Source of the DNA: Carpediemonas membranifera BICM
Taxonomy: Eukaryota > Protista > Fornicata
DNA: 61,895 nucleotides
Direction of reading: 5' to 3'
Assembly: GCA_019828565.1 (NCBI GenBank)
Contig: JAHDYR010000005.1
Span: forward strand, 1,253,942 to 1,315,836
In this document: one piece after another, positions 1,647-53,749 of the stretch
How the letters are laid out: the number at the start of each line of letters is the position of its first letter
Position numbering within the stretch: position 1 is the stretch's first letter
The notes under the pieces: generated by a model
What the model saw: the letters and a program-made list of their open reading frames with translations, nothing else
The model's database searches: none
What the model was told of the DNA's origin: nothing
Program-made: the position numbers and the translations under genes

Positions 1647-2883
1647 ATGGTGTTCGAGCTAGATAGCGACAAGCTGGAGCGACTTACTTCCTTACCTGGT
1701 AATAGTAGACAATATCTGCACGACTTTGAACCTGAAAAGCTGCAGGTCGTGATCAAAGTTGATGAGCATTATGATATGGAGGTTCCCACCCTGCTAGCGC
1801 TCAAGGACAGTCCGCATGTCCTCCCTGTCGTCGATACAGGTTTTGTCGACCGTGATCCAGCCTTCATGGCTCCTTTGGTCAACTGTACCCCCTTCGCTGA
1901 CATCTGCCAGGCTCACTCCAGCGTGCAGTTCCGCTATGTTTCGCATCTGCTGCAGGCAGTATGCTACATGCATGACCACGGGGTTGTCCATTGCGATATT
2001 AAGCCAGACAACTTCCTCTTCAGCAAGAGTCAGAAGGGATACCTCATTGATTTTTGGGTCTGCAATGAGGGAAGCCGGCTAATGGCGACGACAGGTGGGC
2101 CATACAACTGAGATTTGTATCCGAGTATCGCGGCACCCATGGATATTTGCCCCCAGAGCTGTTCTACGAGTACCTTGTCTCGCGCTCAGTGATTACTGCT
2201 GCACGCGACACCTCCAAAGCTCGCGCGCATGACGGCAGGGGGCTCTTTCCGTCACTTCTTATGTCGTGACACCTGCATCGGACATTTACTCTTGCGGTGT
2301 AGTCATTTTGATGCTCTTTTACGGTCTCCCCAAGTCCCCCTTTGCCGCGAAGGTGACTGACATGGGTGCAAACATGGCGCAGATCGACAACAAGAAGAAG
2401 AAGAAGATGCTGAAGCTTGGTAGCTTGCTGAACTGGTGCCAATTCTATGGTGGGCAGTTGCAGTTGTCACCTCAGGCACAGACACATTTCAAAGATTGCC
2501 TCGAGTGTGTCAGCGTGAACTCTGAGCTCCCGATTCGCGGCACCACGCCACCTACTTGTCTCAGCCTGTACGACCTGGCAATGCAGATGCTCCACTTCGA
2601 CCCAACAAAGCGTCCCACTGCTGCCGAATGTCTTGACAAGCTCAAGGTCATCATGCGCGTGCATGAATGCGTCGCCAAGCCGAGTCCGCTTCTGTTAGAT
2701 GATACAGAAGAGGTCACCCTGTCTGCAGCTCAGCGAAAGAGACTGACCGACTGCTGTCAGCGAGGGTTTGAGGGTCAAGTCTTCTATCGGCGCTGCATAG
2801 TGTGTGGTAGAGACCTTCATGGACGCGAGAACGTCAGCTGTGACACATGCCACAAAGGGATACAGGCAGGTGAGCACCAATAA
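1647..2883 (+). CDS. Ser/Thr protein kinase (frameshifted) with C-terminal CxxC..CxxC module; transposon cargo
   Basis: Motifs VVIKV, HCDIKPDNFLF, GYLIDF(G) at a T/G homopolymer, GTHGYLPPE (2131-2157, alternate frame), SDIYSCGVV, FDPTKRPTAAECL, then CIVCG..CDTC. Confidence 0.85.
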
Positions 2884-3150
2884 GTGCGCAAAAGGTGTGC
2901 GCGGAAGACTGCACAGGCAGTTTATTGCGATGATTGAGCGGACGTAAAGAGATTGATACTTTCTGTGATGCAGGAATGAGATCAATGCTGCTGACAGGTC
3001 TCGAGATGGCAGAGGTGCTGGAGAAGAGAGAGCAGAAAAAGGCATCAGAAGTAAATGAACGAGGTAAATTCCAGTTCGCCGGAGATGATATCCTTCCTCG
3101 TACGCGGCATGTGTCTTGGGTCTTAAGTTCGCCATTTTAATCTCGTTGCG

Positions 3151-3339
3151 AGCATAAAATGCACACTTGTGCATTCGAGTACAATGACGAAATCCCTCAA
3201 TATGCTACCAGCAGTGCATTTAATAACCAATATCAACGCCGAAACGCGTGTAGTTCGGAGCCATGTAGTTGTTTGCGCTCGTTTGTCCCCCTATTACCGA
3301 AACTGGTGCTGTACTCTAGAAAATCACTAACAACATCAA
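3151..3339 (+). repeat. ~190-240 bp dispersed internal repeat, copy 1 (inverted relative to 57140-57379 and 60423-60662)
   Basis: GCACACTTGTGCATTCGAGTACA...GTACTCTAGAAAATCACTAACAACATCAA is shared by the three loci. Confidence 0.9.
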
Positions 3340-3412
3340 CTCCTTTTTCTCCGCAATGCAGATGAGAATGCCTATTCTCGCGATCTATAACTACCAATCA
3401 TGTTTTCATTCT

Positions 3413-5972
3413 TTACTCATACTTGCCACAGATGCACACATCCAGTGAGATCTCTCCTTCCTCATGGACATCGATGTCTAACCATTGCCCGTCAAACACG
3501 AGCCCTACCTGCCTCAACACCTTCTTCCATAGACCATCCACTTGACCTTCAAACAGAGGTAACAGTTTCTGACAGTCTCCCTCGTCCAATGTTCCAGTGC
3601 CCTCGCTCCGAATACGGATCCAGTGTTTGGCGTCCTTGCAGCAGCGATGAACGCGCATTGTCTTCAGACGTATTTGGTGGGGAACGTCTGTTGACTGTCG
3701 CCCATACGAGACGACGCCACGGAGGAATCGGTAAAACAACTCGACCTGCTCCTTCAATATCGTTCTCTCAAGGACCATCTGGTTGCGCCTTAAGTGTACT
3801 CTACTTTCCTGATTGCCAATAAAGTCGCGCTCGAATGACTCCTCAATAATCCGGCCAAGTGGGACTCGGATTTTTGACTGAATCTCCGGCAACACAGCAA
3901 CTCGCGCTAAGCCATGAAGTGTGTCGATGGAGGGAGCCTTCTTGGCTACCTTAGACGGCGGCCGGATTGGAATAGACTCCGACACGGTGCTGGTCGTGTT
4001 CAGACACATTGTCAGTGAAAAGAGGTGAACAAGCAACGCTGTCAGTCGATGCCAGGTGATAATGTCATCTGTGGCCTCCTCGTGAGAGTAATAATGCTCT
4101 TGCAGGTAGGCAACGAGTCTGAAAAGTGGCTGAACGGGGGAGGGAATGCCATGTAGAGACTGTTTCCAATTGACGCGATCATCTTCCTCCCCTTCACTTG
4201 CTCATTACAGCCAGTCGTGCGACTGGGAGGTTCAAACTTAGCCAGCCTGGCGAGGTCAGCGTTTCTGGCCTTCTTGGTCTTGATTTCCTCCGGGGGTAGA
4301 GTCTGGGTCGACCTCAATTGGCTTGAACATCCGACAAATGTTGTGTATCAAGGGAGACGAAGTCATGACTGAGGTGCATGATCGGCGGGACAAGGAAGAT
4401 TTTGCCCCTATCGAGAGTTGGGTCATCCGAGTTCTCGAATAGGCTGGGCATGATGCACTTATTCTTCTTGTTGTAGAACGACCCCCACTTCTTCTCTCTA
4501 TCCAGGACTGTCTTGTCCTCAACAGACATCTTCTTCGCATACATCACGTCTGCAATCGTGTTTCGTGGGGTGAGACCGAATGGGCTCCAGGCCTTGTTGT
4601 CAGCATGTACCGAGCTGAATGGAGAGGGATAGCTGCCGCCAATCAAGGTTCCACAGACTTTTGACATCGCTGGGTGGTCTGCGATGAACATAACGCGAGT
4701 GACACGGCACAGGAGACCGGTATTTCTCACCTCAAGTGACTCGCGATGGGTACTCTCGACTGAGCGCTCGATGAAGTCGAAGAATTCTCCAATGCGCTTC
4801 TCTGGTCCGTTGTACTCGAGTATGCGGAAGGGTGGTGTTCCGCCTGACGGGAAGACTTTGCCGGAGACATCGATAAACCGAACCTTCACAGATGTAGTCA
4901 ACCCTCGCCATCCATCGACCCAGACGAGAAGATCAAGCGGCACTGTCTGAGTCTCTTCAGCTTGAGTCTGCGCTGTCAACTGCTTGCCCACGTTCTTACG
5001 AGCAGCCCTTGACCTCTCGAGATCGATAGGCGAAGCCACCGCCTGGCGATAGTACCGCATGAGGTCAAACTCAGCGTGTTGCACATGGGAATACCTGCCG
5101 CTAGACTGGAGACGCGGGTTGAGACCGGCTCTCTTCATCACGTCATTATGTGCAGTTCGCTTCATTGCCGATTCGTAGAAGATGCACACCGTCGTACCTC
5201 TGAGCACTTCAGTGTTATAGTCGTCGCCGTCGAATGTAGCGTTGACTTGTTCGAGGTCTGCGTCGACGTGGGTAATCAGGTCGAGGTCATACTCGCGGTG
5301 ATCCTTGTCCGTCCTCTTTGCTCGTGTCTCTTGAGTGATCGCCATGGGTATGTAGCCCTTTAGGGCCTTTTTTCAAGTTCCTATGCGACTTGACAATGGT
5401 CTCAACGTCTGCGATGTTCCGAATGCTGCACTGAAGCGACTTGACTTGGTTTTGTGACCTGATTGATGTTGATAATGTCAAGGTTGAGTCTCTGTGCAAG
5501 GGGCTTGCATGATGTGAATCTCGTCATTGACTGCATTCACGCCGATCGTGATGGCCCTGAGCTCGTTGGACACCTGCAGAAGACGTTCAGTGTCAGCAAT
5601 ACGCTTACGTAGACGAGCATTCTCTGCCTCGAGGCCGAAGCTATCAGAATGCAGAACATATGCACCAACGTAAAGGTGACTGGGACCAGAGCGGTGTGCC
5701 TTCTTCTCCTTTGAGATGCTAGTGGATGATGGCGCTGGGTAGAGATTGCTAGAAATAGCCTCACGCGATACAGCGCCGATATTGATTAGTTCCTGCGCGA
5801 TGCGGGCTAGCTCGAGCCTTTGCTGGTGTTTGGAGGTATCAAATCCGTTAATACGGCGATCCACTGCGTCAATCGAGAGCCAGACGCTGCAAAGGATGGT
5901 ATTGATGTCATCAGTGCCCTCCGGAGCATAGATAGATCCGTTAGACAGTTTCCACTTCAGTTGAAGCGCCAT
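3413..5972 (-). CDS. CACTA/CMC-like DDE transposase of element A (interrupted: ORFs 5972-5478, 5345-4314, 4317-4042, 4036-3413)
   Basis: LLVWVDGW (first D), FIADHPAMSK..G..YPSPF (DxPA-type second D), PPIMH, LLVHL and EESFER (E) resemble CMC/EnSpm motifs. Clear homology to 27353-29060. Confidence 0.7.
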
Positions 5973-8421: not shown

Positions 8422-8496
8422 GTAGATTATCTAGCGTTTTGAGGTCGAAGATAATCTAGGGTTTAGCAAAGATAATCTAGGGATGTTGACAGCATG
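8422..8496 (-). repeat. Terminal inverted repeat of element A with internal CTAGATTATC/GATAATCTAG motifs
   Basis: Reverse complement begins CATGCTGTCAACATCCCTAGATTATC and matches 52549 onward. Confidence 0.85.
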
Positions 8497-9627
8497 ACCC
8501 CGAGCATGACCTGGGACGCAGCTTACCTAGCCGCAACCGCCCAACTGCACGATGTGGGCTGGGACAGAACCCCCGACGAATCAACCTTCGCCGCCAACGA
8601 CACCTCCATCGACTGGCCTCGTGGGATGGACCAGCTCTACGGCAAGCCCGTGACTGGCCTTCAGCGCACCCTAACAAAAATCTCTCGCGCCCATGCAGCA
8701 GCCGTCGCCCCGATCGTGGAGTCGACCCCGGTGACCCCGATTCTCGCGGCCGAAGCCGCCCTGTCCCCCCTCTCCTATGCGACGCCGATCCGTGGCGACC
8801 TTTTCACCACCATGGTGAGGTCACACCTCGGCGCACCACCGTTCGAGACGGACTCAACCGTCCGCTGCCCGCTCTGCGGTAACTCGAATGTGTCGTGGCA
8901 GCACACGTTGTCCTGTCCTAAGCTCCTGGAGGGTGCCAGGACCATGCGTCATGACCTAGTTCGTGACTGCGTGCGCTCCTTCCTGTGGAGTAACGACGTG
9001 CTTGCCCGCAAGGAGTTCGCCTTGAACAGTCGCACCCGCGGCTACTCGGCCGACCCAGCCTACCAGAGTAACGCTCGCGCCGACGTCTATGTCCCGCTGC
9101 GTCGCTCTCCCACGGGCAGGGTCGCCAACGAGCCCATCATCATCGACGTGGTGATCTCGAAGGATCAGGCCAACGCCGAGTCAGACAAGTCCGCGCAGTA
9201 CCACAACTGGTCAGCCGAGCTACTGACGGCCGCCTGCGAGATCACTGGCGAAGCGTGCAGTGATGACCAGGGCGAGTCCTGGTGTGTGAGATTGTGTAAG
9301 ATGGTCGGCCTGAGTGTGGGGGCCGGCCGCTTCCCTGGAGCAGGAAGTGATGCGCTGCATCTGGAACGGCAACGTCCAGATCTACTCGGATTACGTCACG
9401 CAGTTCGAGCGGGCCACAGCGCAGGACTGGCTGCGGGAATAATTTGTGCTGGAATCTCATCTCGCGTGTGGAAAGGCCGAGGGGGCCGGCGACGAGGCTG
9501 CGGGAGCAGCCGGAGGAGCCGAACAAGGGATGCCCACAGGTGACACATCTAAGTCGACACAGGCGCGGGAATACAGGCGCGAACGTCTCTGGACGCAGCG
9601 TGAAAGGAGGTTTTCGACCTATTAAAC
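8497..9627 (+). mobile_element. CRE-like non-LTR retrotransposon copy 1 (3' part; interrupted by transposon A)
   Basis: Near-identical to 12478-13606. Encodes CPLCG..HTLSC, RHD and AD..IIIDV..K endonuclease motifs. Confidence 0.9.
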
Positions 9628-9631
9628 GGCG

Positions 9632-12600
9632 ATGGTAGTCTCAGTCTTTGTCAGCAAAGAAGTCGTGGAGCGGCTTCTGAGCGGGACTGAAGGAACTATC
9701 CAGCTCGAAGATCCTGTTTCCCAGATCTTCGACGCCGTGCGCATTCTGTTTGGTAAGCATGTACCAAAATCTCTCTTTGCCGAACACTGGTCCTCGTACC
9801 AGAAAGTCCGCCGCCTCTATAACGATGTAGAGCTTGTGAAAAAGCTGTTCATTCAAGATAGAGGACGTCCCGAGCGCTTCACCAAGAGAGTCTCCGAAGA
9901 ACTCATTGCCACTGTGAGTCCGCTCTTCCCAGTGATCCAGAGGCCCTCAAACCGAGACTTCAAGCAGAGATTACACCAAGTACTAAGCTCAATCCAGTTG
10001 ATCAGGAACCTACCGCCGCATCCCGTCCAATTCCTGATGCACCGAATGGACTCGCGAATCCGTATAGACACAGAGGGCCGTGACCATACGCTATCCCTAG
10101 GCCGCCGCAGGGCTCTACTAGAGCAACTACGGGCGGCGGGATGCCCACGGCTCTCCACCATCGATGAGATTGACAACGGACCCGTTGCGTCAGCCCACCA
10201 AACATCAGGAACGCAGATCGAGAGGGAGGAGATGATGATCGCGGAGCTTATACCCCCGATAAGTCCACCTCTCGGCTCAGGACCACCCACCCCCGCCCAG
10301 TCACAGGAGACAGGCATCGTGCCTAGACCTAACGACAGCGAGGGAGACCAGTCGGCCCACGAATGTCCAGCCTAGACATAACGGGGCACCCGCTCCCATG
10401 CCTGGCGGCCAAAGCGTGGCTGACACCAACCACCGGGGGATGGACGTACCAACGGTCCGAGTGAACCAGGCTATCGCAGCCTTCGCTCGTGACCTACGGG
10501 ACGCCATCCACCCGGACCTGCGGGAAGAGCTCTGGCGTGATGCCGACACAGTCCGCCAGACGCTTCTCTCGCCCCCCGCGCTCGAGCGAGCCATGGGGAC
10601 GGAGCGCAGGAGGCACCTCACGAAGGCGCAAGCCATCGAGATTGAGACGTGTCTCCTGCGTGCCGCAGGCGGCCTAACCCTGCCCCCCCACTTCTCGCGC
10701 CGGTTCCCGTCGAACGGGATTGTGGCCAAACATGGCTCACGCCGTGTTGCGGCCGCAGCGCACATCGCTCTGGGGCTGCCGCTCCCTGCTATATTGGCGC
10801 ACCCTGCAACACAGGCCACCAACAATAGGCAGACCCGAGCGCCTACAAGACCTCTTGGGTTCCTTCCAGACCCCGCCGACGTGGCTCGCATCGGCCGCAG
10901 CCGACCGACGCGGAGGGGAACCAAGGGTTATGTCCGTGCCCTCATCGGAAAGGTCACCGCCTGCGCGGCAGCCAGAGATGAGGACAAGCGCGATCGTCTC
11001 ATCGACGTGATGCTGCACCCACAAACAGCACTTCGCCCCCGGAGGACCCGCCATAATCAGGTGGGAAGCACGTCGAGAAGCCGACTCGCCTACCAGCACG
11101 CCAGACGAGGGTACTACAGCAAGTCCATGAGTGCCCTGGTCTCGGAAGAACTGCAGATGACCCCAGCCGAAGCAGAGGAGAAGATGGTTCGGATGCAAGC
11201 TGACCCCTTCCAAGGCAGTCTTGATGACCTCCCAATCCGCCATCCCCTCGCCCCGCTCACCTCGGTAGAGTTCGAAACTCGGGACATCATCGATGTCCTG
11301 AGCAGTCTTCCGGCCGACTCGGCTCCCCGGTCCGTCGGGCATGAGCTTCCTCCACTTGAAGCTCGCCGCTAGACACAAGCCAGAAGCCTTCGCCCTTGCC
11401 CTGAAGCCACTACTTGTCGATGTGGCCGAAGGCGTCCCGTACACAAACGTTCTGGCCCACTCCCGCCTCGTCCCACTGCCCAAGCCTGGCAAACCCGACG
11501 AGGTCCGGCCCATCGCCATGGGAGAGGCCCTTCGTCGAGTAGCAGCCAAGCTACTAGCCAAGGCGGTTACCGCGTCCCTCGCGGATGACCCTCTCCTCGA
11601 TGACCAGTACGGGCGGGGGTGAGTCGTGCGGCACAGAAGTTATGGGTCTGCGCCTGCAAGAAGCGTATTCCCGTGGCCAAAGCATCTGCGCCGTTGATCT
11701 CAGCAATGCGTACGGCACCATGCCCCGCAAATTGTTGAGGTCCACAGCCGCCGCGGCCTGCCCTGTTGCGATCCCGTACTTTGACGCCGTATATGGCAAT
11801 GGAAGGCTGGTTCTGCCGTCCGGCCGCGTCGTCGAGTCCCTAGAGGGCATCGCTCAAGGAGACCCACTGTCCCCCATTCTCTTCACGCTGGCCATGCGGC
11901 CAATCATCGACACGCTGAAGACGAAATGGGGCGGCGAGTGGGTTGCCTACCAGGACGACGTCACATGGATTGCCCCCCGGGGACGACTAGCGGCGCCATC
12001 CAGGGCTTTTTCGATGGAGCTTGTGAAGCTTTCCGACAAATTGGCGTAACAATGAAACCGGCTAAATGCCAGTGGATTTGTGCATCCGCGCCGCAGAATG
12101 CACGTACTGTTCGCGTTACGTGCTCGCCAACTGGAGTAATCGTGGGAATTCCCATTGGCGGCATCGAAGCGGAACGGATGCAGCTCATGACGAAGCTAGA
12201 CGAGCAGAAACAGATGTTGCTTAGTGTGGTGTCGATGGTTGAAGACATTGGAACGGATGGGACGTCCGTTGCTCTGAATCTTATCCGTTCGTGTATTCTG
12301 CCGAAGCTTTCATTTTTGATGAGATCTGTCGATCCAGCCCAACACCGTGAGACCATACGAAACTTCGAGTCCAACGTCCTGACGCCGGCGATTGCGAGAA
12401 TTCTTCTCCTAGACCCTGAGAAGTACAACTCACTCCGGCTCGGCCTCGATTTCTCCGATAACGGCCTCCGCCTGCCCACCCCGAGCATGACCTGGGACGC
12501 AGCTTACCTAGCCGCAACCGCCCAACTGCACGATGTGGGCTGGGACAGAACCCCCGACGAATCAACCTTCGCCGCCAACGACACCTCCATCGACTGGCCT

Positions 12601-13421
12601 CGTGGGATGGACCAGCTCTACGGCAAGCCCGTGACTGGCCTTCAGCGCACCCTAACAAAAATCTCTCGCGCCCATGCAGCAGCCGTCGCCCCGATCGTGG
12701 AGTCGACCCCGGTGACCCCGATTCTCGCGGCCGAAGCCGCCCTGTCCCCCTCTCCTATGCGACGCCGATCCGTGGCGACCTTTTCACCACCATGGTGAGG
12801 TCACACCTCGGCGCACCACCGTTCGAGACGGACTCAACCGTCCGCTGCCCGCTCTGCGGTAACTCGAATGTGTCGTGGCAGCACACGTTGTCCTGTCCTA
12901 AGCTCCTGGAGGGTGCCAGGACCATGCGTCATGACCTAGTTCGTGACTGCGTGCGCTCCTTCCTGTGGAGTAACGACGTGCTTGCCCGCAAGGAGTTCGC
13001 CTTGAACAGTCGCACCCGCGGCTACTCGGCCGACCCAGCCTACCAGAGTAACGCTCGCGCCGACGTCTATGTCCCGCTGCGTCGCTCTCCCACGGGCAGG
13101 GTCGCCAACGAGCCCATCATCATCGACGTGGTGATCTCGAAGGATCAGGCCAACGCCGAGTCAGACAAGTCCGCGCAGTACCACAACTGGTCAGCCGAGC
13201 TACTGACGGCCGCCTGCGAGATCACTGGCGAAGCGTGCAGTGATGACCAGGGCGAGTCCTGGTGTGTGAGATTGTGTAAGATGGTCGGCCTGAGTGTGGG
13301 GGCCGGCCGCTTCCTGGAGCAGGAAGTGATGCGCTGCATCTGGAACGGCAACGTCCAGATCTACTCGGATTACGTCACGCAGTTCGAGCGGGCCACAGCG
13401 CAGGACTGGCTGCGGGAATAA
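9632..13421 (+). CDS. Non-LTR polyprotein: N-terminal region, reverse transcriptase, CCHC finger, restriction-like endonuclease (probably one ORF, broken by 1-bp indels)
   Basis: SAPGPSG, RLVPLPKPGKPDEVRPIAMGEALRR, QYG, DLSNAY, GIAQGDPLSPILF, AYQDD, CPLC-x8-HTLSC, RHD, RADVY, IIIDV, K..Y. Confidence 0.9.
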
Positions 13422-13606
13422 TTTGTGCTGGAATCTCATCTCGCGTGTGGAAAGGCCGAGGGGGCCGGCGACGAGGCTGCGGGAGCAGCCGGAGGAGCCG
13501 AACAAGGGATGCCCACAGGTGACACATCTAAGTCGACACAGGCGCGGGAATACAGGCGCGAACGTCTCTGGACGCAGCGTGAAAGGAGGTTTTCGACCTA
13601 TTAAAC
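9642..13606 (+). mobile_element. CRE-like non-LTR retrotransposon copy 2 (full length, about 3.97 kb)
   Basis: Flanked on both sides by GGCGATGGTAGTCT (9628-9641 and 13607-13620). Encodes RT and RLE. Confidence 0.92.
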
Positions 13607-13610
13607 GGCG

Positions 13611-16600
13611 ATGGTAGTCTCAGTCTTTGTCAGCAAAGAAGTCGTGGAGCGGCTTCTGAGCGGGACTGAAGGAACTATCCAGCTCGAAGATCCTGTTTCC
13701 CAGATCTTCGACGCCGTGCGCATTCTGTTTGGTAAGCATGTACCAAAAATCTCTCTTTGCCGAACACTGGTCCTCGTACCAGAAAGTCCGCCGCCTCTTT
13801 AACGATGTAGAGCTTGTGAAAAAGCTGTTCATTCAAGATAGAGGACGTCCCGAGCGCTTCACCAAGAGAGTCTCCGAAGAACTCATTGCCACTGTGAGTC
13901 CGCTCTTCCCAGTGATCCAGAGGCCCTCAAACCGAGACTTCAAGCAGAGATTACACCAAGTACTAAGCTCAATCCAGTTGATCAGGAACCTACCGCCGCA
14001 TCCCGTCCAATTCCTGATGCACCGAATGGACTCGCGAATCCGTATAGACACAGAGGGCCGTGACCATACACTATCCCTAGGCCGCCGCAGGGCTCTACTA
14101 GAGCAACTACGGGCGGCGGGATGCCCACGGCTCTCCACCATCGATGAGATTGACAACGGACCCGTTGCGTCAGCCCAACAAACATCAGGAACGCAAATCG
14201 AGAGGGAGGAGATGATGATCGCGGAGCTTATACCCCCGATAAGTCCACCTCTCGGCTCAGGACCACCCACCCCCGCCCAGTCACAGGAGACAGGCATCGT
14301 GCCTAGACCCAACAACAGCGAGGAGACCAGTCGGCCCACGAATGTCCAGCCTAGACATAACGGGGCACCCGCTCCCATGCCTGGCGGCCAAAGCGTGGCT
14401 GACACCAACCACCGGGGGATGGACGTACCAACGGTCCGAGTGAACCAGGCTATCGCAGCCTTCGCTCGTGACCTACGGGACGCCATCCACCCGGACCTGC
14501 GGGAAGAGCTCTGGCGTGATGCCGACACAGTCCGCCAGACGCTTCTCTCGCCCCCCGCGCTCGAGCGAGCCATGGGGACGGAGCGCAGGAGGCACCTCAC
14601 GAAGGCGCAAGCCATCGAGATTGAGACGTGTCTCCTGCGTGCCGCAGGCGGCCTAACCCTGCCCCCCCACTTCTCGCGCCGGTTCCCGTCGAACGGGATT
14701 GTGGCCAAACATGGCTCACGCCGTGTTGCGGCCGCAGCGCACATCGCTCTGGGGCTGCCGCTCCCTGCTATATTGGCGCACCCTGCAACACAGGCCACCA
14801 ACAATAGGCAGACCCGAGCGCCTACAAGACCTCTTGGGTTCCTTCCAGACCCCGCCGACGTGGCTCGCATCGGCCGCAGCCGACCGACGCGGAGGGAACC
14901 AAGGGTTATGTCCGTGCCCTCATCGAAAGGTCACCGCCTGCGCGGCAGCCAGAGATGAGGACAAGCGCGATCGTCTCATCGACGTGATGCTGCACCCACA
15001 AACAGCACTTCGCCCCCGGAGGACCCGCCATAATCAGGTGGAAAGCACGTCGAGAAGCCGACTCGCCTACCAGCACGCCAGACGAGGGTACTACAGCAAG
15101 TCCATGAGTGCCCTGGTCTCGGAAGAACTGCAGATGACCCCAGCCGAAGCAGAGGAGAAGATGGTTCGGATGCAAGCTGACCCCTTCCAAGGCAGTCTTG
15201 ATGACCTCCCAATCCGCCATCCCCTCGCCCCGCTCACCTCGGTAGAGTTCGAAACTCGGGACATCATCGATGTCCTGAGCAGTCTTCCGGCCGACTCGGC
15301 TCCCGGTCCGTCGGGCATGAGCTTCCTCCACTTGAAGCTCGCCGCTAGACACAAGCCAGAAGCCTTCGCCCTTGCCCTGAAGCCACTACTTGTCGATGTG
15401 GCCGAAGGCGTCCCGTACACAAACGTTCTGGCCCACTCCCGCCTCGTCCCACTGCCCAAGCCTGGCAAACCCGACGAGGTCCGGCCCATCGCCATGGGAG
15501 AGGCCCTTCGTCGAGTAGCAGCCAAGCTACTAGCCAAGGCGGTTACCGCGTCCCTCGCGGATGACCCTCTCCTCGATGATCAGTACGGGCGGGGTGAGTC
15601 GTGCGGCACAGAAGTTATGGGTCTGCGCCTGCAAGAAGCGTATTCCCGTGGCCAAAGCATCTGCGCCGTTGATCTCAGCAATGCGTACGGCACCATGCCC
15701 CGCAAACTGTTGAGGTCCACAGCCGCCGCGGCCTGCCCTGTTGCGATCCCGTACTTTGACGCCGTATATGGCAATGGAAGGCTGGTTCTGCCGTCCGGCC
15801 GCGTCGTCGAGTCCCTAGAGGGCATCGCTCAAGGAGACCCACTGTCCCCCATTCTCTTCACGCTGGCCATGCGGCCAATCATCGACACGCTGAAGACGAA
15901 ATGGGGCGGCGAGTGGGTTGCCTACCAGGACGACGTCACATGGATTGCCCCCCGGGGACGACTAGCGGCGCCATCCAGGGCTTTTTCGATGGAGCTTGTG
16001 AAGCTTTCCGACAAATTGGCGTAACAATGAAACCGGCTAAATGCCAGTGGATTTGTGCATCCGCGCCGCAGAATGCACGTACTGTTCGCGTTACGTGCTC
16101 GCCAACTGGAGTAATCGTGGGAATTCCCATTGGCGGCATCGAAGCGGAACGGATGCAGCTCATGACGAAGCTAGACGAGCAGAAACAGATGTTGCTTAGT
16201 GTGGTGTCGATGGTTGAAGACATTGGAACGGATGGGACGTCCGTTGCTCTGAATCTTATCCGTTCGTGTATTCTGCCGAAGCTTTCATTTTTGATGAGAT
16301 CTGTCGATCCAGCCCAACACCGTGAGACCATACGAAACTTCGAGTCCAACGTCCTGACGCCGGCGATTGCGAGAATTCTTCTCCTAGACCCTGAGAAGTA
16401 CAACTCACTCCGGCTCGGCCTCGATTTCTCCGATAACGGCCTCCGCCTGCCCACCCCGAGCATGACCTGGGACGCAGCTTACCTAGCCGCAACCGCCCAA
16501 CTGCACGATGTGGGCTGGGACAGAACCCCCGACGAATCAACCTTCGCCGCCATCGACACCTCCATCGACTGGCCTCGTGGGATGGACCAGCTCTACGGCA

Positions 16601-17396
16601 AGCCCGTGACTGGCCTTCAGCGCACCCTAACAAAAATCTCTCGCGCCCATGCAGCAGCCGTCGCCCCGATCGTGGAGTCGACCCCGGTGACCCCGATTCT
16701 CGCGGCCGAAGCCGCCCTGTCCCCCTCTCCTATGCGACGCCGATCCGTGGCGACCTTTTCACCACCATGGTGAGGTCACACCTCGGCGCACCACCGTTCG
16801 AGACGGACTCAACCGTCCGCTGCCCGCTCTGCGGTAACTCGAATGTGTCGTGGCAGCACACGTTGTCCTGTCCTAAGCTCCTGGAGGGTGCCAGGACCAT
16901 GCGTCATGACCTAGTTCGTGACTGCGTGCGCTCCTTCCTGTGGAGTAACGACGTGCTTGCCCGCAAGGAGTTCGCCTTGAACAGTCGCACCCGCGGCTAC
17001 TCGGCCGACCCAGCCTACCAGAGTAACGCTCGCGCCGACGTCTATGTCCCGCTGCGTCGCTCTCCCACGGGCAGGGTCGCCAACGAGCCCATCATCATCG
17101 ACGTGGTGATCTCGAAGGATCAGGCCAACGCCGAGTCAGACAAGTCCGCGCAGTACCACAACTGGTCAGCCGAGCTACTGACGGCCGCCTGCGAGATCAC
17201 TGGCGAAGCGTGCAGTGATGACCAGGGCGAGTCCTGGTGTGTGAGATTGTGTAAGATGGTCGGCCTGAGTGTGGGGGCCGGCCGCTTCCTGGAGCAGGAA
17301 GTGATGCGCTGCATCTGGAACGGCAACGTCCAGATCTACTCGGATTACGTCACGCAGTTCGAGCGGGCCACAGCGCAGGACTGGCTGCGGGAATAA
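13611..17396 (+). CDS. Non-LTR polyprotein (RT and RLE), copy 3, frameshifted
   Basis: Same motifs as copy 2. Several indels differ between the copies. Confidence 0.9.
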
Positions 17397-17581
17397 TTTG
17401 TGCTGGAATCTCATCTCGCGTGTGGAAAGGCCGAGGGGGCCGGCGACGAGGCTGCGGGAGCAGCCGGAGGAGCCGAACAAGGGATGCCCACAGGTGACAC
17501 ATCTAAGTCGACACAGGCGCGGGAATACAGGCGCGAACGTCTCTGGACGCAGCGTGAAAGGAGGTTTTCGACCTATTAAAC
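13621..17581 (+). mobile_element. CRE-like non-LTR retrotransposon copy 3 (full length), directly abutting tRNA-His
   Basis: Near-identical to copy 2. Its 3' end ...CGACCTATTAAAC runs straight into the tRNA gene. Confidence 0.92.
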
Positions 17582-17582
17582 G

Positions 17583-17654
17583 GCGATGGTAGTCTAGGCG
17601 GTAGGACACGAGATTGTGGCTCTCGAGACCCGAGTTCGAGTCTCGGCCGTCGCA
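17583..17654 (+). tRNA. trnH-GUG: tRNA-His (GUG)
   Basis: Cloverleaf: acceptor GCGATGG/CCGTCGC, D stem GTCT/GGAC, anticodon stem CGAGA/TCTCG with loop TT-GTG-GC (17616-17618), T stem CCGAG/CTCGG with loop TTCGAGT. Followed by CCA and a T5 run. Confidence 0.95.
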
Positions 17655-17658
17655 CCAG

Positions 17659-18166: not shown

Positions 18167-19050
18167 TTAATGGGATGAGAACAGTGTCTCAGCAGTTTTT
18201 CTTAACTGCGACGGATGATTTCTGATGGCCTCGCCGATGTAGGGGCGGAGTGAGTTGCCATTGGCCCATGTGCCCAGCTGTAGCAGGGTCTCGAGGGGTG
18301 TCCCGGCGAGGGCTAACTCGGAGGCGGCCCCCTTGCGGAAGCTGTGGAGGCCAACGCGGTCGTCGTTGAACGTCCTCCGGAGCTCATCTCGCATGTACCG
18401 CATGGAGGCCGCCTTCCGTCGGCTGATTGTACGGTCGGAGGTGATGACTCTCCAGATGCCGACATCTGGCGGCAAGCGGAGGCCGAGAACCCATCTCTTC
18501 AGCGCGAATGCGGGGTTGAAGGGACCCAGTAAGACGTTCGGCAGGGATTTTGACACCTTAGTCTGAGTCTTGGTCTGGCCGATGAGGAGTTGGACGTCTC
18601 CGTTGGCTTTGAAGACGATGTCGTGAGGAGTGAGGCGGAATATCTCTGCCCCACGGCTGACTGTTAGGTATGCGATCGCGGCGAACAGGGTCGCCTGGTA
18701 AGCCGAGACGCTGTCGTTCCGACGAGTGATTGCGCGCAGCATGTCCTCCTTGAGTATGGGCGCCGAGCCACCTGTCATGCCGTCCGTCGAGGCGTGGGCG
18801 GCGATGCCGCGTCGAATCTGAGAGCAGTAAGGACTGGGAAGCCAGTCGGAGAACAGGGGCGCGGCTCGCTCTATCCAGTAGCCCTTGCGCTCTACAGTGG
18901 CTGGGGCGTTATGCTCTGCCTCCTCCTCGAGGAAGGCTCGGTATACTTCGGTGTCGTCTAAGTCCTGGCCTCGAAACTCTATAAAAGCGGTGATCCAGCC
19001 GGCTACTGCTCGGCGCGTCTCGTGTCTGCGCATGTGAGCGAGTATTGGGT
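18167..19050 (-). CDS. Tyrosine recombinase of DIRS-1 (3' part of ORF 18167-20248; start approximate)
   Basis: TVSRGAEIFRL (R), GQTKT (K), HSFRKGAA (HxxR), LGTW, LRPY (Y). Confidence 0.9.
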
Positions 19051-20910
19051 GGTTGACAATGCTGGTGAACAGGTCTGGAAGGCGAGGGCCATGAAGCGGA
19101 TATTCCCGTTCGGCTTGGCCAGGCGCTCTACGAGAGGGAGGTTGTCGGACGCGAAGTCGCTCCTGGGGATGGAGAAGGCGATCTTGCAAGTTGCCTGTGA
19201 TTTGAGGAGTCGGAGCTCGGGCGATGTGATGTCTGGGACGACGAGGAAGACGGCTGAGGTCCAGGTTGACGGAGGGGATGTAGTCCGGGTCGCGAGGATC
19301 GAATTCAGGACTCGACAGACCCGACCCAGTATCATCGGCGACGGGGGTGGTGCCGCATAGATCCGGTGTCCGCGCCAGTCCCGGTCCATCCCGTCTTGCC
19401 AGGAGGTGGAAGCGAACCCTGGGAGGAGTAGACTGTGGTCTGGGTATGGAGTTACGTCTACGTCCACCGGACCCCAGCTGGACAGGATCTGCTCGAGGAC
19501 GTGGGGTGGTGTGAGCAACCCCCGAGATAGGCGGTCTGCAGCTAGATTGAGATGACCTGGAGTGTGATGGGCGCTGATGAGCAGTCTCTTCGCGCTCATC
19601 TCGCGGTAAAGGGAGTGGAGGATCTGCAGGGCCATTGGCGGAGCCTTCGAGCTGCCCTCCTTGTTGATCCAAGCGACACACGTGGTGTTGTCGGAATACA
19701 CGGACAGGCGTCTCGTCTGAGGCTGTGTTGGCACCAGGCGCGAGCCGAAGAGTACGGCTGCCAACTCCTTCACATTGATTGACTGATTGGCTAGCGCGCC
19801 ATTGAAGGAGCCGTGGCTGCTCTGCGTGGTGGCTGCCCACTGGGCGCCCCAGCCCGAGCCTGAGGCGTCGGTTGATATGACCAGCTCGAGGGTCTGGTCG
19901 TTCTGCCACATGTTCTTCAGCTCCACGAAGGGGCGGCTTGGACGGCTGGACAACAGCTCTTGCCATTCTCGAAGTTCTGAGGCGTAGGGTGTGATGTCGA
20001 TCCAGTCCGAGGGAGCCCTTGGCAGTGACCGGAGCTTTAGTGTGGCTCTGTGGGCGGATGTCGCGAAAAAGGACAGCTTGCCGACCAGCTTCGCCCAGTC
20101 CTCCGCCTTCATGCGGCGTTGAGCGAGGGCTTCGGTAATGCACGCTTGGTATTTCTCCGCCTTGTCGACTGGAAGGCGAAGGGTCTGGTCTGCCGAGTTC
20201 AGAAGCAGACCAAGGAACTCGATGCACTGGCAAGGAACCAGAATGCATTTCTCTAGAGATGGTATTAGTCCGAGGGCGTCCAGAGTTTGCATGGCCCGTG
20301 GTAGCTCTGCTTTGAGGTGGGCCTGGCTCTCGGCGGAAAGAAGAAAGTCGTCTAGGTATACGTTGACTGTCACGTGGTGCCGCAGGGCGATTATCTTCGC
20401 TGCCTGGATCATGGTGGACTGGAAAAGAAGGGTGCCGCCGTCCACCCGAATCCGAGGGTGCGGTAGCGAAATGCTCGCCCGTCTGGAAGTACGATCCCCA
20501 GGAGAGGCTTGTCGCTGTCCTTGATGCCGAGCTGAGAATATCCAGACCGGAGGTCTATCTTGGCCATCCAGGCATTCTTGCTGAGCGTGTTGATGGCCCG
20601 TCTGATGCCGAAGAGTCGGAAGGAGCGACGTTCTTTCGAGACGCGGTTGAGACGCGTGAGGTTGTGTATTACACGAATGTCCTGCCCCTTGGCCACGGCG
20701 AACAGAGGGGCGCTGCGGCGAAGTTCTGAAAGTCGTGTCGGCTCGATGATACCATCTTCCTGCATCTTGGAGAGTTTGGGTAAGATACGCGGGTCGATCG
20801 AGTTTTGTGGACGCGCCGGAGGGGGAGGATGCGTGAGCTCGACCGGGATCCCTTCTCTGATCCAGCCCACGACTTGCTGAGAGGCCTTGAATCTTTCCCA
20901 CACCCACCAT
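19003..20910 (-). CDS. DIRS-1 reverse transcriptase, RNase H and methyltransferase-like domain (one frameshift near 20420)
   Basis: KIDLRSGYSQL, LGFGWTAAP, VYLDDFLL, EFLGLL, STDASGSGWG, INVKEL, YSDN, NLAADRLSR. Then WGPVDVD..RDW..IYAAPPP..FLVVP (MT-like). Confidence 0.9.
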   Translation of the reverse strand: MVGVGKIQGLSASRGLDQRRDPGRAHASSPSGASTKLDRPAYLTQTLQDAGRWYHRADTTFRTSPQRPSVRRGQGAGHSCNTQPHASQPRLERTSLLPTLRHQTGHQHAQQECLDGQDRPPVWIFSARHQGQRQASPGDRTSRRASISLPHPRIRVDGGTLLFQSTMIQAAKIIALRHHVTVNVYLDDFLLSAESQAHLKAELPRAMQTLDALGLIPSLEKCILVPCQCIEFLGLLLNSADQTLRLPVDKAEKYQACITEALAQRRMKAEDWAKLVGKLSFFATSAHRATLKLRSLPRAPSDWIDITPYASELREWQELLSSRPSRPFVELKNMWQNDQTLELVISTDASGSGWGAQWAATTQSSHGSFNGALANQSINVKELAAVLFGSRLVPTQPQTRRLSVYSDNTTCVAWINKEGSSKAPPMALQILHSLYREMSAKRLLISAHHTPGHLNLAADRLSRGLLTPPHVLEQILSSWGPVDVDVTPYPDHSLLLPGFASTSWQDGMDRDWRGHRIYAAPPPSPMILGRVCRVLNSILATRTTSPPSTWTSAVFLVVPDITSPELRLLKSQATCKIAFSIPRSDFASDNLPLVERLAKPNGNIRFMALAFQTCSPALSTTQYSLTCADTRRAEQ

Positions 20911-52548: not shown

Positions 52549-53749
52549 CATACTGTCAACATCCCTAGATTATCTTTGCTAAACCCTAGATTATCTTCGA
52601 CCTCAAAAAGCTAGATAATCTACGGTTGCAAGAAAAAATGAACTCGACGATGAGCCGGAGCTGGATCTTCAAAGTGGTATGGTAGTACTTGGCTATACCT
52701 AAGCAATACGCATGCGCAGTATCAAACTTTAAATCCTGCTAGAAAAAAGTAACATAGGGACAATTTGGAATTGAGAGTTGAGACTCAAAAAACGGGCAGG
52801 GGGGAGGAAATGGTCCATAAGTACGCCTTATGGGTCGCTTCCTCCCTCTGCCCCTTTTTTTATCGCAAAATCGATTTGCCGGATTTGACACATGTTTGAT
52901 GTGATCAAAATGGATTTGATAGACATGGGTCCAGATCATGCAGTTGGCCATCCTGAAGCGCTAGGGCGGTCTGCAGACCGCAGCAATGCCTCTGCTGAAT
53001 GCCCTTCGCCTGACGGACAGGACGCGCGTTGACTCTAAAGGACTGCATGTTTCGGCATTAAAAGAAGGTGTGGAATACAACGGAGTCATCGCCGAACCGC
53101 TCCGACCAAGTCGGTTATTAGGACATCGCGTTCAGACGCCCTCTGCAATTACCAAGTCAATAGATGGGAGTCGACCTGATCAGCACGTCATTCGGGGTCT
53201 CAGGTGACCCTATAGCTGAGCTTGGCTGGGCTCTGCTGCGGCCATGGGCCGCTAGTATATGTCTCTTATCAGCGTGGTGAAGATCAGGAACACGATGTAG
53301 GATCGCTTGCAAAAGCATAGCCGGATCCATCTCGCCACCGTCACCACGGTACCTCGCGATGTACTCCTGCAGCTTCGGAATCATCCTCAGTAGCGCTTCA
53401 AACATCATGCTGGCGTATCCTGCTGAATCCTTCACCCCAGAGCTCATATCGGTTTCTTCAGAACGAAATTCTAAAGAAATGTTCGGTGGTAAGTGAGATC
53501 ACTGCGCATCTAGAGACAGCAGAAACGTAACCTACAGCCCATATTGATGTGGGCTGGTCTTATCCGGATGTCCAAGGACCTTGATTCGCTCTGGGGTAGT
53601 CCCCCCATGACCGTCAGGCACGCGAACCGCATCCTGCACGAAGCGGGGATGCAGAGTCTGAAAAGACCCATCTCTCTGTCCGATCTGGATACCCCTGACG
53701 ACAGATGGAATGACTGAAGCTGTAAACATATCCATTGACTCTGAATCTT

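Follow-up and report, generated by a model that had tools for sequence, protein, structure and literature searches.

Carpediemonas membranifera BICM (Eukaryota; Protista; Fornicata) carries, at the 5′ end of its histidine tRNA genes, head-to-tail arrays of a retrotransposon that is here called the His element. Three of its copies lie at positions 8497–17581 of the stretch of genomic DNA under study (the window: 61,895 nucleotides of GenBank assembly GCA_019828565.1, contig JAHDYR010000005.1, positions 1,253,942–1,315,836 of the forward strand). Judged by its sequence, the element is a real, recently active and strictly site-specific retrotransposon of tRNA-His genes that lacks long terminal repeats (non-LTR) and encodes a restriction-like endonuclease (RLE). 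In our assessment it is probably an autonomous unit of about 3.96 kb with one open reading frame (ORF), which homes to one nucleotide at the 5′ end of tRNA-His and leaves the gene rebuilt.

The insertion site is marked by a 14-mer, GGCGATGGTAGTCT, which occurs at exactly three sites in the window (9628, 13607, and 17582; none of 100 shuffles gave any match). An intact tRNA-His(GTG) gene lies on the plus strand at 17583–17657 (ARAGORN; Rfam RF00005, 62.9 bits), and the third 14-mer (17582–17595, plus strand) therefore consists of G(−1) followed by tRNA nucleotides 1–13 and runs into the remainder of the gene. As the original prediction had claimed, the same sequence, −1 to +13 of tRNA-His, stands at both junctions between copies, at 9628–9641 before copy 2 and at 13607–13620 before copy 3 (both plus strand); the ATG that starts the frame of each of these copies (at 9632 and 13611, respectively) lies inside it. 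On its 3′ side the tRNA-His shows discriminator A73, then CCA, a G and a run of five T residues, and it is a eukaryotic RNA polymerase III (Pol III) gene.

The C. membranifera genome (24.2 Mb in 69 contigs; the window array lies on contig C6) was scanned for further copies. The 3′-terminal 300 bp of the element occur 25 times, with one additional fragment, and the junction could be read for 24 of these 3′ ends. All 24 end in ...TTAAAC, and 23 abut G(−1) of tRNA-His sequence: in 20 cases the 14-mer is followed by the 5′ end of the next copy and in three it is continuous with a complete tRNA-His, while the last 3′ end is followed by a 4,395-bp tyrosine-recombinase (YR) retroelement and then by the 14-mer and a copy. 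The 14-mer directly precedes every element 5′ end (22 of 22). None of the copies sits at a site unrelated to tRNA-His, and of the 26 14-mers in the genome 25 are located at element junctions or tRNA-His genes; the condition that would have refuted the original prediction, most other copies being at unrelated sites, was not borne out. The 75-nt tRNA-His has three perfect genomic copies (on C6, C7, and C39), each occupied at the identical nucleotide, and since their 1.4-kb downstream flanks are unrelated these are independent loci. The element keeps strictly to the 5′ end of tRNA-His; the proposed site specificity, and head-to-tail stacking that leaves the gene intact, thus hold at all three.

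A degenerate tRNA-His sequence at C39:781022 (88% identical) was rejected as a fourth locus; it is a probable assembly duplicate, because it shares its flank with the gene at C39:753953 and a 100-N gap lies about 0.85 kb away. Scaffold gaps of 100 N are found inside or beside arrays on C39 (about 778.0–778.1 kb) and C24 (about 280.7–280.8 kb), and small errors cluster where the array meets the tRNA, about 0.85 kb from the C39 gap. The array lengths given by this assembly are minimum values.

Repeat analysis of the window gives three copies at a spacing of 3975–3981 bp, and the unit between 14-mers measures 3,961 bp. All three copies lie on the plus strand. Copy 1 (8497–9627) consists of the 3′ part only (element positions about 2847–3961) with the 3′ untranslated region (UTR) and retains a CCHC motif (8866–8916) and the RLE motif IIIDVVISK (9136–9162). 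Copy 2 (9642–13606) is full length, 3,965 bp as assembled; copy 3 (13621–17581), full length at 3,961 bp, adjoins the tRNA. The long frame of copy 3, about 1,260 codons, extends from 13611 to the stop at 17394–17396 and is followed by a 3′ UTR of 185 nt (17397–17581), which ends in ...GGTTTTCGACCTATTAAAC without poly(A).

The reverse-transcriptase (RT) core of copy 3 (15296–15946; Pfam RVT_1, E = 2.6e-11) reaches from SAPGPSG (motif 0, 15296–15316) to AYQDD (15920–15934); together with QGDPLSP, these RT motifs of the translation are of the non-LTR type. A thumb/linker region separates the RT from a CCHC zinc knuckle, CPLCGNSNVSWQHTLSC (CPLC...H...C; 16821–16871), which opens the combined CCHC and RLE region (16821–17165) with the endonuclease motifs RHD (16902–16910), RADVYV (17031–17048), IIIDVVISK (17091–17117), and AQYHNW (17148–17165). 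When 17 relatives are aligned, the columns for C, C, H, C, H, D, D, and K hardly vary (at least 90% conserved), and a profile of this alignment matches R2Tg and other solved R2 chains from the RT through the endonuclease (E = 1.7e-54). The best solved-structure matches of the element RT are R2 and LINE-1 ORF2. The element has neither LTRs nor terminal inverted repeats and has one fixed 3′ junction to its target; its termini contain no A-run and no microsatellite, and the unit ends in ...CCTATTAAAC. From these domains and ends the unit is best classified as an RLE-type non-LTR retrotransposon; the RVT_1 match, the CCHC/RHD/D/D/K motifs and the R2-wide profile bear out what had been proposed for its coding region, and the absence of a poly(A) tail is confirmed as well.

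The N-terminal region is less familiar. The first 540 residues contain three cysteines and no CxxC, and a Pfam search of the element protein returned no zinc-finger or Myb family at E ≤ 0.1 and no Exo_endo_phos domain. An AlphaFold single-sequence model of residues 1–240 is all-helical with a mean pLDDT (predicted local distance difference test score) of 46, too poor to use. An Rfam search of the element ends found tRNA only, with no ribozyme or other known RNA, and the fold of the 3′ UTR does not stand out (z-score −1.08).

The length and single ORF expected at the outset (about 4 kb) agree with the 3,961-bp unit and its frame of about 1,260 codons once homopolymer variants are considered. 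Copies 2 and 3 differ at 16 positions, six of which are 1-nt length differences, mostly in short homopolymer runs. A C6G4 run at 15947–15957 shifts the frame of copy 3, where other copies have C7G4 (in frame), C5G4 or CTC5G4; a C5 run at 16721–16725 shifts the frame of copies 2 and 3, where copy 1 and others have C6 (in frame); and a further homopolymer break, C2 versus C3, lies at about 9331. Every frame break is a homopolymer-length variant that is missing from other copies. In one copy elsewhere in the genome 804 codons can be read without a stop from the 14-mer ATG, another has an open frame of 1,056 codons, and because of these long frames and the absence of each break from other copies, we read the element as a putative single ORF blurred by long-read homopolymer errors. 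The ATG that opens the frame corresponds to tRNA nucleotides 4–6, and an in-frame TAA lies 9 nt 5′ of it, within ...TTAAAC.

What starts at 8497 is the 3′ part of a full copy that a DNA transposon has cut, and not a 5′-truncated insertion. Its apparent truncation arises because the terminus of a CATGCTGTCAAC-ended DNA transposon, outside the element, ends at 8496 (8455–8496, minus strand); the missing 5′ part (element positions 1–2849) is found on contig C44 beside the transposon's other terminus, and the terminal sequence that flanks this half-copy (L069:3937) is the same as in the window. Almost every partial copy in the genome is likewise a full copy split by another mobile element, with halves that match within 2–6 bp. 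The CATRCWGTCAA-ended DNA transposon separates a half that ends at element position 2849 from one that starts at 2847 (C44 and the window) and a half that ends at 2710 from one that starts at 2709 (within C24); a CATACTGTTAGAA-ended DNA transposon lies between halves ending at 1803 and starting at 1801 (C42 and C7), and an LTR element between halves ending at 1055 and starting at 1050 (within C39). Two further partial-copy ends stop at 100-N gaps. Where the halves of one copy are on different contigs (C44 and C6; C42 and C7), rearrangement or assembly breaks at the transposons are indicated. CATRCWGTCAA- and CATACTGTTAGAA-ended DNA transposons are repeatedly found inside His-element copies (window 8455–8496 and 52553–52574; L069:3937; L065:5197; L068:2211).

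Several observations weigh against the proposal of a gene-sparing element that homes to one site. One GGCGATGGTAGTCT stands alone at C8:291007–291020 (plus strand), with no tRNA D-arm after it and no element end before it, and no element was found on contig C8; the chance expectation for the 14-mer is about 0.18 per genome. The DNA search with the 75-nt tRNA could have missed a divergent tRNA-His gene that has no element. In the assembly, the frame of each full-length window copy is broken. No genuine 5′-truncated insertion was found among the genomic copies, which is unusual for target-primed reverse transcription. Copies and their flanks could be collected genome-wide, as the original prediction had advised, and the empty tRNA-His loci by which the length of a target-site duplication was to be fixed were not among them: the genome contains neither a vacant tRNA-His site nor a native upstream flank, and both 14-mers that lack a preceding copy have another retroelement there. 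For this reason the duplication and the position of the top-strand nick are features that we infer. Lastly, a search of public sequencing runs gave no C. membranifera run and two low-share matches only. A few contigs of 150–190 nt from these runs (one a microbial-mat metagenome, the other labelled as another organism), 99–100% identical to the element at a depth of 2–4, cover window positions 16966–17269, 14001–14186, and 17254–17439; they are traces of C. membranifera or a very close relative in those samples.

The retroelements that take the place of a preceding copy deserve description in their own right. The YR retroelement of C44 (L070:387–4781; 4,395 bp) lies between a copy that ends at 19181 and one that starts at 14771, antisense to the His element, and fits exactly between ...TTAAAC and GGCGATGG; it has split direct repeats and a 1,077-aa ORF that ends in a Phage_integrase (tyrosine recombinase) domain. 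A second YR ORF is located in the window just downstream of the tRNA (18167–20248, minus strand). On C24, a different RT-encoding element (RVT_1; L066:387–2306), unrelated to the YR element, abuts the 14-mer at 340872–340885 at the very same nucleotide; the C24 array edge was accordingly rejected as a native upstream flank. Retroelements of several kinds seem to be drawn to the site immediately 5′ of G(−1). Other mobile elements land in His-element arrays, which are also places where long-read assemblies are interrupted or read homopolymers wrongly.

The way in which the stacks grow can be followed through haplotypes, defined by the substitutions that copies share in their 5′ 1.48 kb (20 copies). 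Haplotype H1 is found only in tRNA-proximal copies of two arrays, each on its own contig (window copy 3 on C6; C39:754028–757991) and H2 only in proximal or next-to-proximal copies (C7 twice; C39:781119–785068), while H0 comprises eight distal copies of C42, C39, and C24; the youngest sequence variants adjoin the tRNA. In none of the three arrays is either of the two copies nearest the tRNA interrupted, and foreign insertions are confined to copies further upstream. This layering and the uninterrupted proximal copies fit the entry of new copies beside the tRNA, with older ones pushed upstream. It is unlikely that each locus received a single insertion and that the stacks grew mainly by unequal crossing-over or gene conversion rather than by repeated retrotransposition. 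Tandem repeats are prone to unequal exchange, the copies are 99.5–100% identical, and neighbors often share a haplotype (three in C39, two in C7), but H1 is proximal in two arrays on different contigs, and random placing of two H1 copies among the 20 typed positions puts both on two of the three proximal sites with a probability of 3/190. Local exchange, moreover, imports no copies from other loci and so accounts poorly for haplotype layers that run from distal to proximal, and three independent loci would still require targeted insertion. Since identical neighboring copies do occur, some local unequal exchange is likely to be at work alongside repeated insertion next to the tRNA.

The 3′ junction fixed at −2/−1, the 14-nt spacer that equals −1 to +13, the intact gene downstream and the haplotype layers are seen directly; a 14-bp target-site duplication and particular cleavage positions are suggested by analogy. 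As in R2, the endonuclease would nick between −2 and −1 on the bottom strand, and the 3′-OH at the nick would prime reverse transcription of the tail-less element RNA. A top-strand nick 14 bp downstream, between tRNA nucleotides 13 and 14, would then allow fill-in to duplicate −1 to +13. The upstream duplicate would become the 5′ leader of the element and supply its ATG, and the downstream duplicate would rebuild the whole tRNA gene and hence the target. Because such an insertion would be harmless, all gene copies could be occupied and re-used, and stacks would result. The N-terminal region, family-specific and devoid of a zinc finger, would be the likeliest target-recognition module.

The same final structure would be produced if the RNA of the unit itself began with 14 tRNA-derived nucleotides, for example after excision from array or read-through transcripts at a tRNA (or tRNA-like) 5′ end, and were inserted nearly bluntly upstream of G(−1) without any true duplication. 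We regard this as a possible but distinctly less favored explanation, which might also coexist with a staggered cut, the end of the cDNA annealing to the target through the carried 14-mer much as in those R2 elements whose RNA retains upstream 28S sequence. All 5′ junctions seen are full length and precise, as target annealing would give, and the ORF starts within the 14-mer, which in this respect acts as part of the element. The first 114 nt can also be folded (z-score −2.62) so that an internal CCGT(G)CGCA, which nearly copies the tRNA-His 3′ acceptor strand, is base-paired to the 5′ acceptor strand of the tRNA and three hairpins are closed. The fold is weak, however: nucleotides 1–7 pair at long range in 93 of 1,000 shuffles, eight near-matches to CCGTCGCA lie within the element, and neither ARAGORN nor Rfam sees a tRNA at the 5′ leader. 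Read from tRNA +1 (window 13608–13721), the element RNA gives a cloverleaf-like fold whose closing stem copies the acceptor stem of tRNA-His; since that many shuffles pair in a similar way, a tRNA-like 5′ leader was rejected as not significant and the cloverleaf stays an idea only.

The element RT matches many sister families in the genome (40–57% identical), which form arrays of 3.4–4.6-kb units. Their links to tRNAs were judged from coordinates, with 63 tRNA genes scored by Rfam search. Sixteen of the 63 lie 1.6–2.0 kb downstream of a sister-family RT, and they group by tRNA score class and orientation, three classes being in the same orientation and the others opposite; occupied classes include all six tRNA genes at 67.4 bits, all three at 61.3 bits, and both at 64.7 bits. 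A speculative and rather improbable extension of the gene-sparing model is that these represent a radiation of at least six families in which an N-terminal module without zinc fingers has been redirected to various tRNA genes, with the genes always surviving and the unit RNA cut by RNase P. Host RNase P would then free the unit RNA from array transcripts, setting its 3′ end at the real tRNA and its 5′ end at a tRNA-mimicking leader that also provides the start codon. Such a retrotransposon would owe to a tRNA not only its target but also the signals for processing its RNA, and the sister families would be a natural series from which the code of RLE target choice could be read.

The public gene model J8273_6659 (C40 region) is a chimera, in which 155 aa of His-element type (93% identical to residues 83–237 of the N-terminus) are joined to the RT of another family (37% identical). 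More than 20 occurrences of the tRNA 3′ end GGTTCGAATCCCTCCTGGCACATCCTTTT form clusters with 2–8-kb spacing (C31, C37, C38, and C15), and these look like tandem units that each hold a whole tRNA gene. Five contigs of other origin on which related ORFs lie hold no tRNA.

In each of the three tRNA-His genes the genome itself encodes the G at −1 and a CCA that follows A73 (window 17582 and 17655–17657), which are the ends of mature tRNA-His, and CCA is absent from the other tRNA genes seen in the genome. Trailers of 3–4 nt are generally common to paralogous tRNA copies in C. membranifera, so the CCA of tRNA-His may be a single chance event. These marks of a mature tRNA, and the 100% association of gene and element, are what one would expect if tRNA-His were a passenger that moves with the element, through either 3′ transduction or a template switch from mature tRNA-His. 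Such an origin is nonetheless highly improbable: inter-copy junctions carry only 14 nt of tRNA and never a whole one, and sister families lie opposite to their tRNA, an arrangement impossible by co-reverse-transcription. One chance event among about 45 tRNA families could account for the CCA, and duplication upon insertion would already explain G(−1).

Homing of retrotransposons to multicopy RNA genes is a known habit, and the non-destructive variant found here is new. What is novel is that the target is tRNA-His, that the insertion point spares the gene, that all target copies found are occupied, that the start codon lies in the repeat derived from the target and that the N-terminus has no zinc finger. 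The survival of site-specific RLE retrotransposons is attributed to insertion into multicopy genes of which enough copies stay intact; an insertion that spares the gene itself would allow the His element to fill 100% of its targets and to re-use each of them. All histidine tRNA of C. membranifera would then be made from genes whose upstream flank is the end of a retrotransposon. R2-type proteins are under development for programmable gene insertion. In that context the predicted protein, compact at about 1,260 residues and without a zinc-finger or Myb module, may be of practical interest, with sister families beside other tRNAs as a natural swap series for target choice.

A literature search found no paper on Carpediemonas retrotransposons of this kind or on a tRNA-His target. 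The expectation that no tRNA-His-targeting element had been described therefore stands, but the use of a tRNA gene as target is already published: tRNA-specific RLE elements include NeSL-1_TV (tRNA-Pro, Trichomonas vaginalis) and the planarian LIN families LIN15_SM (tRNA-Arg) and LIN25_SM (tRNA-Glu) (Kojima and Jurka, 2015; PMC4640811). These NeSL-related elements resemble the His element in having a single ORF with an RT, a C-terminal zinc knuckle and an RLE, and in targeting one tRNA gene species; the host of NeSL-1_TV, like C. membranifera, is a metamonad. The His element differs in its tRNA-His target, in its insertion at the very 5′ end with the gene rebuilt, and in the occupation of all gene copies found by long stacks. 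Utopia elements carry one to three N-terminal zinc fingers, and some NeSL/Utopia-related members have a Ulp1 protease or RNase H (PMC4640811). Compared by description, the His element lacks an N-terminal zinc finger and shares with the tRNA-specific families of this group the presence of one tRNA gene species at the flanks of its copies.

The CRE clade (CRE1/CRE2, SLACS, and CZAR; GilM/GilT) shares with the His element the RLE architecture, the absence of poly(A) and a strict specificity for a small multicopy RNA gene. GilM and GilT form head-to-tail arrays. They belong to Giardia, a fornicate relative of Carpediemonas, where they are located at telomeres, and are placed in the CRE clade by their RT (PMC10088271). 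The His element differs from this clade in its target, a tRNA gene in place of the spliced-leader gene (in trypanosomatids) or the telomere, and in its lack of an N-terminal C2H2 finger. Protein searches with the His element matched almost only environmental proteins, besides Diplonema proteins that are auto-named SLACS; the RT matches one of these (auto-annotated as “SLACS 132 kDa protein”; 31% identity over 234 aa, E = 7e-19) more strongly than it matches solved R2 proteins. This may be taken as an indirect hint toward the “CRE-like” placement given to the element initially.

R2 provides the mechanistic model, with a bottom-strand nick, target-primed reverse transcription, a second nick and a precise 3′ junction; R2Tg, R2Bm, and other R2 chains align with the family profile through the RT, thumb/linker, CCHC, and RLE. 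R2, however, has N-terminal zinc-finger and Myb domains and a site in 28S ribosomal DNA (rDNA), whereas the His element has neither. R2 inactivates its rDNA unit and never fills all units, while the His element spares the gene, and R2 leaves a small deletion or a variable 5′ junction rather than a gene-rebuilding 14-bp repeat. Utopia is, like the His element, an RLE element of a small RNA gene (U2 small nuclear RNA); some of its families have a 20-bp target-site duplication and Utopia-1_NVit is occasionally tandem (PMC4640811). Utopia nevertheless disrupts U2 copies, and its target and N-terminal domains differ from those of the His element.

Dictyostelium TRE5/TRE3 and yeast Ty3 are, as the His element appears to be, retroelements that use tRNA genes as safe landing sites. 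They are positioned via the Pol III machinery, at a distance or at the transcription start, and employ an apurinic/apyrimidinic endonuclease or an integrase. TRE5-A targets positions upstream of tRNA genes (PMC5391098). The His element, by contrast, has an RLE and one fixed nucleotide within the tRNA sequence itself.

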